Position numbers and translations under genes: made by a program | Assembly: GCF_016432865.1 (NCBI RefSeq) | Contig: NC_067399.1 | Coordinates: 635,066,001-635,130,000, forward strand | Reading direction: 5' to 3' | Origin: Antechinus flavipes | Taxonomy: Eukaryota | DNA length: 64,000 bases | In this document: positions 18,546-19,969 of the stretch, in pieces | Position numbering within the stretch: the stretch's first letter is position 1 | Layout of the letters: each line of letters opens with the position of its first letter | The notes under the pieces: generated by a model | What the model was told of the DNA's origin: nothing | Databases searched by the model: none | What the model saw: only the letters and a program-made list of their open reading frames with translations

Positions 18546-18667
18546 ATGTTTCACAAGGTCAGAGATAAAACACCAGAAATAGATGACCTGCAGCGACTCC
18601 TCTGGACTCAAAGAGGGCCTGGGAACCACATGGATGAAGTCTGGCCTAACGTTTATGTGGGAGATTT
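18546..18667 (+). CDS. Intervening DUSP13-like atypical dual-specificity phosphatase, coding exon 1
   Basis: ATG with A at -3. Encodes MFHKVRDKTPEIDDLQRLLWTQRGPGNHMDEVWPNVYVGDL. Donor TT|GTAAGA, phase 2. The frame is also open upstream to an acceptor at 18487. Confidence 0.85.
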
Positions 18668-19084
18668 GTAAGATATCTCTGTCCGTTCTTCCTCGGTCCA
18701 TCCTGTCTCTCCCCTGATCTCCTATCCTTCCCCAAATCATATATCCTAGGACCCAAACTGGCAATCAAATTACAGAGGGATCTGGGGCTGTCCTGGAGAA
18801 GTCATAGGGGAGGGAATATTAAGACTGAGCCATAGCACTGGAGGACGAGGGCTGGATTATAGGGGTTGAGCCCAGAGTTAGGCTCCGAGATACTGGAGTT
18901 CAGGAAGGGTGTTTTAGGATTCTGATTATGATTAAGAGGTTTCCATTTGAGATGTGGGTTAGGGTAGGAATTAGGGTTGGGGATTCTTGAGGTTGAGCCT
19001 CAATCAGGCTCCCAGGTATTGGAGGCCCATTGCCATCTGACCTCCTAGCAACTTCATGTGTCTTGGGCCTCCTTCCCACCACAG

Positions 19085-19305
19085 ATGGGCGGCCAGGAAT
19101 CTCAAAATGCTACAGGACCAAGGAATCACTCATGTCCTCAATGCTACCCATGGGGTTCTGGGCGTGTCTACAGGATCCAGTTATTATTGTCACTTACCTG
19201 TGACCTACCACGGGATACAGGCTTTTGATGACCCAGCCTTTGATCTCAGTGCCTTTTTCCACGAGGCAGCAAACTTCATCCAGGGAGCACTGGAGACACC
19301 GGGCG
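19085..19305 (+). CDS. Intervening DUSP13-like phosphatase, coding exon 2
   Basis: Acceptor ccttcccaccacag|. Encodes [23 protein letters not shown]...YHGIQAFDDPAFDLSAFFHEAANFIQGALETPG. Donor G|GTGAGA, phase 1. Confidence 0.92.
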
Positions 19306-19724
19306 GTGAGAGGGCAGAACAGGGGGAGGGAGGCTCTTTTTGACTCAAGCCCCCCATCCTATTCTCATGATCAGGCATAGATAATGGGGAGCAAGAGTCG
19401 GTCTAGAGTTCTAGGGTCCCAAGGCCTGGAATCTGGTGGGGTTTAAGGGCCCTAATGGTCCCTGATTTTCTGTCACATTGAGCTGCAGGTCTCCAGTCTA
19501 TAAAATGGAACAGGGACTCTTCTTTCAGTCCTTCCTTTTATACCCACTTTAGGTTGCTCTCAATTCCCCATACTCATGGCATGGTTTATTGAATCAAGGA
19601 AACCTGAGTTCAAATCCAGCCTTAGATACTTATAGATGCATGATCCTGGAAAGTCACGGAATCTCTCTTACCCTCAGTTGCACTTGATAGCCTCTTAAGC
19701 CTCCGCTCCCCTGATTCCCTGCAG

Positions 19725-19969
19725 GGAAGGTGCTTGTCCACTGTGCCATGGGGCTCAGCCGCTCTGCCACCCTGGTCCTTGCCTTCCTCATGCTCCGGAA
19801 GCAGCTGACCCTGGTGGAAGCTCTGAGGACAGTAAGTGTCCATCGGAACATCTGCCCCAATCGGGGGTTCCTGTCCCAGCTGCGTGACCTGGACCTGCAG
19901 CTTAGCCAACAACAGCGTAAGGGGAGCGGGGAGAATCTGACGCCATCCGCCACTTTGCACCGAAAATAA
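19725..19969 (+). CDS. Intervening DUSP13-like phosphatase, coding exon 3 (HCAMGLSRS). Spliced protein 195 aa
   Basis: Acceptor ctgattccctgcag|. Encodes [57 protein letters not shown] to TAA. Exon lengths 122+221+245=588 nt with no stop or frameshift. Confidence 0.93.

Follow-up and report, generated by a model that had tools for sequence, protein, structure and literature searches.

The DUSP13 locus is a textbook case in which one mammalian gene encodes two unrelated-looking phosphatases, MDSP (DUSP13A) and TMDP (DUSP13B). We analyzed a 64,000-nucleotide (nt) stretch of the Antechinus flavipes genome (GCF_016432865.1, NC_067399.1, positions 635,066,001 to 635,130,000, forward strand; hereafter the window), in which an initial annotation, made from the letters alone, had placed a third, intact phosphatase gene between DUSP13A and DUSP13B. 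An intact open reading frame (ORF) does lie there, with the annotated exons and no internal stop. The evidence supports, with good confidence, a real and conserved three-exon gene for an atypical dual-specificity phosphatase of the DUSP3/13/26/29 group, the third unit of an array that runs DUSP13A, third gene, DUSP13B and then DUSP29, the last outside the window. The gene comprises the following features; contigs X1, X4 and X26 are assembled RNA contigs of related dasyurids.

18487..18545, + strand: exon 1, 5' untranslated part, following the acceptor AG at 18485-18486; open and in frame with the coding sequence
18546..18667, + strand: exon 1, coding part, from ATG to a phase-2 donor, 40 codons plus 2 nt; present in contigs X1, X4 and X26
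19085..19305, + strand: exon 2, with GITHVLN, the predicted general-acid motif AFDDP and AANFI; present in spliced contigs
19725..19969, + strand: exon 3, with the phosphate-binding loop (P-loop) and the C-terminal tail; stop codon TAA at 19967-19969
19965..19970, + strand: polyadenylation signal AATAAA, overlapping the stop codon

Both introns are of the GT-AG type (donors GT at 18668 and 19306; acceptors AG ending at 19084 and 19724), and the joined coding sequence of 588 nt specifies 195 amino acids (aa) and TAA without an internal stop. All phosphatase motifs listed in the initial annotation were recovered in the product, including ICPNRGF. Intron phases are 2 and then 1 in all three units of the window, so that exon swaps between units stay in frame. 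Searches used the exons or an identical database protein (P0327) as query. The product matches XP_051838010.1 of Antechinus flavipes, "dual specificity protein phosphatase 13-like", at 195 of 195 residues; the suspicion that the gene might exist only as an unnamed LOC model is thus borne out by a RefSeq entry called "DUSP13-like" and inconsistently named orthologues. Our literature search found no paper on a third gene at the DUSP13 locus, and the published term "Dusp13c" was rejected as a candidate, being a primer name for a C128S mutant. RefSeq already predicts the third gene, an ordinary atypical DUSP, under muddled names; what seems undescribed is its status as a distinct and ancient member of the DUSP13 cluster that eutherians lost.

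Twelve or more marsupials, from American as well as Australian lineages, possess orthologues, with predicted proteins in, among others, Sarcophilus, Sminthopsis, Macrotis, Notamacropus, Petaurus, Trichosurus, Phascolarctos, Vombatus, Monodelphis and Gracilinanus. The labels given to these vary: "DUSP13A isoform X1" in Sminthopsis, "DUSP13 isoform X2" in Sarcophilus, "13B-like" elsewhere and, for one orthologue, "DUPD1-like". Eleven aligned marsupial proteins, spanning the Didelphimorphia-Australidelphia split, contain neither stops nor frameshifts. Invariant positions among them amount to 54 of 60 in the catalytic core (residues 116-175), 42 of 74 in exon 2, 23 of 41 in exon 1 and 2 of 20 in the C-terminal tail.

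Transcription was examined with RNA contigs aligned to window positions 14700-20300, where runs of three related organisms matched part of the exon words. The predicted junctions 18667-19085 and 19305-19725 are both present in the dasyurid contigs: X1 (1372 nt, depth 121), X4 (646 nt, from a declared RNA-Seq library) and X26 are spliced as 18485-18665/18667, 19085-19304/19305 and 19724/19725-19966..19988. Contig X2, from a fourth run, is unspliced over the third gene and DNA-like. The spliced contigs end at 19975-19988, ~6-20 nt beyond AATAAA, with X1 entering sequencing adapter at 19975, and the exon mismatch rate in contigs is ~2-3%, about half that of most flanking pieces. Within intron 2, positions 19590-19650 belong to a very high-copy repeat (summed contig depth 1,400-15,000 in all four runs) that carries many loose contig ends at 19591-19632; it is probably a marsupial short interspersed nuclear element and not part of the third gene.

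The contig match to the third gene starts at 18485, with an upstream exon attached before it. The loose upstream ends of X1 and X26 have a single match in the whole window, at 13340-13366, with 0 mismatches where chance would give 0 matches; since this place is in DUSP13A exon 3, some transcripts at least must run from that exon into the third ORF. Two further features follow from the contigs.

13337..13368, + strand: end of the upstream exon, in the 3' untranslated region (UTR) of DUSP13A exon 3; AG/GT boundary with donor GT at 13369; splices to 18487 or to the cassette at 17970
17970..18161, + strand: optional cassette exon, included in a single contig of a related species (X26)

In Sminthopsis the cassette exon supplies an upstream ATG and thereby a 238-aa "isoform X1" (P0154); the window has GTG at this place. 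Human and mouse MDSP mRNA likewise carries downstream exons, in mouse exons 4-5 as 3' UTR, an arrangement that resembles the splicing from DUSP13A exon 3 to the third gene in dasyurids (PMC11274236). The third protein would be translated from transcripts starting near DUSP13A exon 3, or from those of a promoter of its own.

The exon held in common with DUSP13A, together with the shared exon phases, raises the question whether the third ORF is simply an alternative ORF or isoform of one complex DUSP13 gene, in keeping with the first description of human DUSP13, and NCBI indeed files it among DUSP13A isoforms in Sminthopsis and DUSP13 isoforms in Sarcophilus. We consider this possible but doubtful. 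The third product has no residues in common with the DUSP13A or DUSP13B products, the unit possesses its own stop codon and poly(A) site, and in Antechinus, wallaby, possum and Gracilinanus NCBI gives it a gene model of its own; the difference is in any case one of book-keeping, not of biology.

It is improbable that the exons form an unprocessed pseudogene or untranslated sequence, transcribed only within a long DUSP13A 3' UTR and yielding no protein. Such a state would fit the upstream-extending contigs, all of which join DUSP13A exon 3 beyond the DUSP13A stop, and has a counterpart in the mouse MDSP mRNA with its downstream exons as 3' UTR (PMC11274236). However, the ORF is intact in 11 marsupials with a nearly invariant core and a tail free to vary, and the unit has its own AATAAA and transcript ends. 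Coding differences from the related-species contigs are mostly synonymous (synonymous:non-synonymous 7:3 for X1 and 5:2 for X4). In a transcript starting at DUSP13A exon 3, moreover, the main AUG would be preceded by just one other AUG, a weak one, and the short ORF that this opens would terminate 240 nt ahead of the main AUG.

The predicted product has the sequence features of a Cys-based dual-specificity phosphatase. Pfam DSPc (PF00782) is matched at residues 37-169 with 95.9 bits against a cut-off of 33.5, and the P-loop HCxxGxxR(S/T) occupies residues 119-128. Residues H120, C121, G124, R127 and S128, as well as D89, are invariant in 17 marsupial and sauropsid sequences, and in the PDB alignment D89, within AFDD, falls opposite the two Asp residues of the TMDP sequence EADDNP. 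An AlphaFold2 model (predicted local distance difference test 74, predicted template modelling score 0.73) shows a VH1-like alpha/beta fold, for which Foldseek returned TMDP 2GWO as best match (E 9e-17, template modelling (TM) score 0.84), followed by DUSP26, DUPD1, DUSP13A and VHR. By sequence, the closest solved structures are DUPD1 (62 bits) and TMDP (54 bits) for exon 2 and TMDP for exon 3. Catalysis would be Cys-based, with Cys121 as nucleophile, Arg127 binding phosphate and Asp89 acting as general acid, and the intact motifs and their conservation indicate a probably active enzyme.

DUSP27/STYXL2, in the wider group, is inactive. A catalytically dead, STYX-like binder could likewise explain the long stem branch of the marsupial proteins and their substrate-facing exon-2 loop, which differs from that of the sauropsid orthologues. 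Such a pseudophosphatase is nevertheless highly improbable here, as His120, Cys121, Arg127, Ser128 and Asp89 are invariant in all 17 sequences and the fold model superposes on active TMDP.

Among known enzymes, DUSP13B/TMDP (human 2GWO, 2PQ5) resembles the third protein in fold (TM score 0.84), sequence (54-55% identity), P-loop context, exon phases and locus. The third gene lacks the N-terminal MDSLQ.QDLRRPK of TMDP, and the true TMDP orthologue is a separate gene of the window. DUSP29/DUPD1 (2Y96) and DUSP13A/MDSP (5XJV) belong to the same subfamily but to separate, well-supported clades. The closest relatives outside marsupials are sauropsid genes named "13B-like", "13-like" or "DS13B" (Calypte anna P0212, Sphenodon P0214, first unit of Alligator P0285), which show the highest non-marsupial identity, share the residues WAAR, AFDD, AANFI, AMGLSRS and LSQLRDLD, and have the same three-exon structure in the same slot between DUSP13A and TMDP (fused models). 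The marsupial proteins differ from them by the long stem branch and the altered exon-2 loop. The sauropsid label "13B" misleads, since a true TMDP-type unit is present separately in birds and alligator.

The neighbours of the third gene were located by tblastn of its protein against the window, which returned two more three-exon paralogues, both on the + strand.

10890..13186, + strand: DUSP13A (MDSP) orthologue; exons 10890-11053, 11879-12096 and 12978-13186; 196 aa
26765..33658, + strand: DUSP13B (TMDP) orthologue; exons 26765-26952, 27877-28094 and 33456-33658; 202 aa

No DUSP29-type gene was found within the window. For wallaby, Gracilinanus and Trichosurus, the NCBI annotation shows SAMD8 on the opposite strand and, after it, three separate genes with products of 195 aa, 193-197 aa and 211 aa; the unit adjoining SAMD8 in these three marsupials is a different 195-aa gene, not the third gene. 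Outside marsupials, neighbouring units are fused in single gene models: DUSP13A plus third-type in Mergus and Eudromia, third-type plus TMDP-type in alligator and pigeon, TMDP-type plus DUSP29 in Chaetura, and third-type, TMDP-type and DUSP29-type together in sturgeon. The third-type slot accordingly lies between a DUSP13A-type and a TMDP-type unit, on the same strand, in the window, in three other marsupials and in the fused bird, alligator and sturgeon models. Models from lungfish, mackerel and sturgeon (P0009, P0011, P0002) contain an extra unit beside DUSP13A, "13A-like 2" (clade 98/95), that is without counterpart in the window; given this unit, the ancestral array may have been larger still.

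The initial annotation had left open whether the gene was retained or gained, and a tree of DUSP13A, DUSP13B and DUSP29 relatives, together with gene order, points to retention. In the careful tree (61 domain sequences, two support values per branch), the marsupial third genes form one clade (100/99) outside the DUSP13A, TMDP and DUSP29 clades. The sauropsid "13B-like" genes form another (98/97). The DUSP13A clade (99/98) includes the window gene at 10890-13186, which joins Manis DUSP13A at 100/100; the TMDP clade (96/86) holds window DUSP13B, eutherians, pigeon, caecilian and the second units of fishes, with window DUSP13B joining eutherian TMDP at 100/99; and the DUSP29 clade is supported at 98/99. 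Constraining the marsupial third genes to group with mammalian TMDP was rejected by the approximately unbiased (AU) test (delta log-likelihood 37.4, p-AU 0.006), and same-type genes occupy the same slot in birds, alligator and sturgeon. The third protein is 61-64% identical to bird, reptile and tuatara genes versus 51-57% to the best eutherian TMDP isoforms. It would be orthologous to the sauropsid "DUSP13B-like / DS13B" genes and to the first unit of the sturgeon and gar tandem models, an orthology that would date it to the amniote ancestor at least, and probably to the ancestor of bony vertebrates. The array DUSP13A, third gene, DUSP13B, DUSP29 is probably ancestral to bony vertebrates, and to amniotes at least. 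No monotreme orthologue was seen among the best 120 matches of the protein searches, which is not evidence of absence. A protein labelled Lampetra planeri (P0280, from a 36-kb contig) has a first domain that groups with the teleost Lampris (100/92), which suggests contamination or mislabelling, and it was therefore excluded from dating the family.

A marsupial gain by recent tandem duplication of DUSP13B or DUSP13A, which the tandem position, the identical exon phases, a protein identity of ~50-55% to both neighbours and NCBI names such as "13B-like" would suggest, is hardly credible in view of the rejected grouping with mammalian TMDP, the eutherian orthologues that window DUSP13A and DUSP13B each possess, the greater nearness of the third protein to sauropsid genes than to eutherian TMDP (51-55%), the third-type units between DUSP13A and TMDP in birds and alligator, and a relic at the same place in eutherians. 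The third gene is not a recent copy of either neighbour.

That relic bears on the suggestion that eutherians may have lost the gene. Protein searches found no eutherian protein closer to the third gene than TMDP, and no intact eutherian orthologue was found; at the syntenic place, the grey squirrel locus retains a decayed exon 3. Of the proposed decayed remnant between MDSP and TMDP in human, the remnant itself was recovered as DNA in grey squirrel, and its human counterpart through a partial protein entry. Long eutherian isoforms contain a non-phosphatase stretch between the DUSP13A and TMDP parts; its alignment to the P-loop region of the third protein far exceeds that of its shuffles, with z = 6 to 11 in macaque, drill, squirrel and river dolphin. 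RefSeq isoforms of Bos (P0312) and Sciurus (P0314) join DUSP13A exons 1-2 via relic exons to TMDP. Some eutherian long-isoform models take their first 29-38 residues from an alternative frame of DUSP13A exon 3, which makes that exon dual-coding in them. The grey squirrel locus (L004) is laid out as follows.

L004, 2049-4560: DUSP13A exons
L004, 4470-4583: leader piece, in an alternative frame of DUSP13A exon 3
L004, 5549-5725: leader piece
L004, 6869-6964: leader piece
L004, 10179-13372: TMDP exons

Local DNA alignment of the window third-gene exons against squirrel 4584-6808, with 200 shuffles, placed exon 3 (window 19730-19895) on squirrel 5554-5720 with a score of 203 and 103/171 identical positions (shuffles 86 +/- 12, maximum 129). 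On the same squirrel segment, exon 3 of squirrel DUSP13B scored 157, that of window DUSP13B 143, that of window DUSP13A 121 and that of squirrel DUSP13A 114. The relic acceptor lies at the base equivalent to the acceptor of third-gene exon 3. Relics of exons 1 and 2 were not found in squirrel 4584-6808, their scores falling within the shuffle range; a weak tblastn match at squirrel 8147-8227 (E 0.24) was out of order and taken as chance.

Collinearity of the two loci is supported by a downstream anchor.

21012..21106, + strand: conserved anchor, ~1 kb beyond the third gene; homologue of the leader exon that comes next in eutherian TMDP-L1

By blastn the anchor is 80% identical over 98 nt to squirrel L004:6809-6905, and it lies at a similar distance from the start of exon 3 in both loci (window, 1287 nt; squirrel, 1257 nt). 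The wider element at 21012-21146 shows 80% identity to the squirrel exon for the third TMDP-L1 leader piece (KQHQ.CRDRRL...) and ends at a CAG/GTGAGT donor; with stops nearby in the equivalent frame of the window, this element could represent a 5' exon of DUSP13B transcripts that does not code.

At the protein level, hhalign matched 16 eutherian relic peptides to the third family (93.5%, E 2.3e-7) ahead of TMDP (85.5%), DUSP13A (9.5%) and DUSP29 (6.8%). The relic stays in the ancestral frame with a dead P-loop (Cys121 to Pro, Arg127 to Gln/His, Ser128 to Phe) and occurs in isoforms of primates (including the partial human entry), lemur, bats, camelid, ruminants, mustelid, squirrel, pangolin and dolphin. 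A Pontoporia peptide, LCRVSDPLSQL, aligned with an 11-residue stretch, was dropped as belonging to a different exon (squirrel 9232-9324). Eutherians would have lost the third gene by disappearance of exons 1-2, with exon 3 kept in frame as an internal exon of DUSP13 transcripts.

This history may extend to a human isoform. Expression of TMDP-L1 is driven by a promoter that p53 activates and that lies "in the intron", immediately before the exon with the start codon; its 24-residue N-terminal peptide is predicted by SignalP to be a signal peptide, and the protein is partly secreted and localises around the nucleus (PMC11274236). The TMDP-L1 leader exon is homologous to third-gene exon 3 in position, acceptor and reading frame: its N-terminal Met-Gly-Leu aligns with Met-Gly-Leu of the P-loop sequence CAMGL, and its Leu-rich core with the helix that follows. 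Unlike its counterpart it is no longer a phosphatase exon; the helix has turned into a Leu-rich hydrophobic stretch, and it is spliced, through a newly arisen donor, to the exons downstream and to TMDP. The TMDP-L1 leader is likely to be a fossil of the third-gene catalytic exon, in which the CAMGL Met became the start codon, P-loop and helix became a secretion signal or membrane anchor, and a p53-responsive promoter came to lie in former intron 2. The homology is supported, and the relic would then be the origin of a working signal peptide.

Several points weigh against a conserved, separate and ancient third gene. On the RNA side, support comes from assembled contigs of related species rather than from Antechinus flavipes, a contig spanning two genes is no proof of a single molecule, and, as all upstream-reaching contigs are joined to DUSP13A exon 3, the ORF may be the downstream cistron of that message and be translated poorly. 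The substitution counts were taken from a partial list of contig differences and do not constitute a formal ratio of non-synonymous to synonymous rates. In the tree, the third-type sequences (marsupial, sauropsid, amphibian and first fish units) fall on one side of a branch with only 66/89, the marsupial stem is long (0.5 changes per site), and an exclusive marsupial plus sauropsid clade appeared only in the quick tree (84 in the Shimodaira-Hasegawa-like approximate likelihood ratio test) and is absent from the careful one; the AU test does not reject this clade (p-AU 0.093). The relic was seen as DNA in one eutherian, the grey squirrel. No neighbouring DUSP exons were found within the 10-kb flanks of turkey (L001), hummingbird (L002) and wall lizard (L003), so that synteny outside mammals rests on the fused gene models. 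The backbone of the tree is weak, and where the tree resolves poorly, orthology draws its support from gene order.

With a third gene at the locus, the ancestral array would have had three phosphatase units before DUSP29, not two, all three of which are kept in marsupials, sauropsids and fishes. Vertebrate phosphatome counts and orthology tables (13A / 13B / 13B-like / DUPD1-like) would then need correcting. The middle exons and long isoforms of DUSP13 have so far been without explanation, and the third gene would account for the origin of the TMDP-L1 leader. If the fossil reading of TMDP-L1 is true, an "enigmatic" human isoform is explained by a marsupial gene as its living ancestral state, and a dead catalytic exon recycled as a signal peptide would offer a clear example of such reuse. 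It is this evolutionary reading, rather than any novelty of the enzyme as such, that gives the finding its value. What the lost enzyme does can be studied in tractable marsupials such as opossum, dunnart and devil.

Two further stretches lie between the genes. A run of 580 N at 14106-14685, an assembly gap or masked stretch, separates DUSP13A from the third gene. Between the third gene and DUSP13B, a conserved non-coding block at 23210-23377 is 72% identical over 174 nt to squirrel L004:8781-8938.

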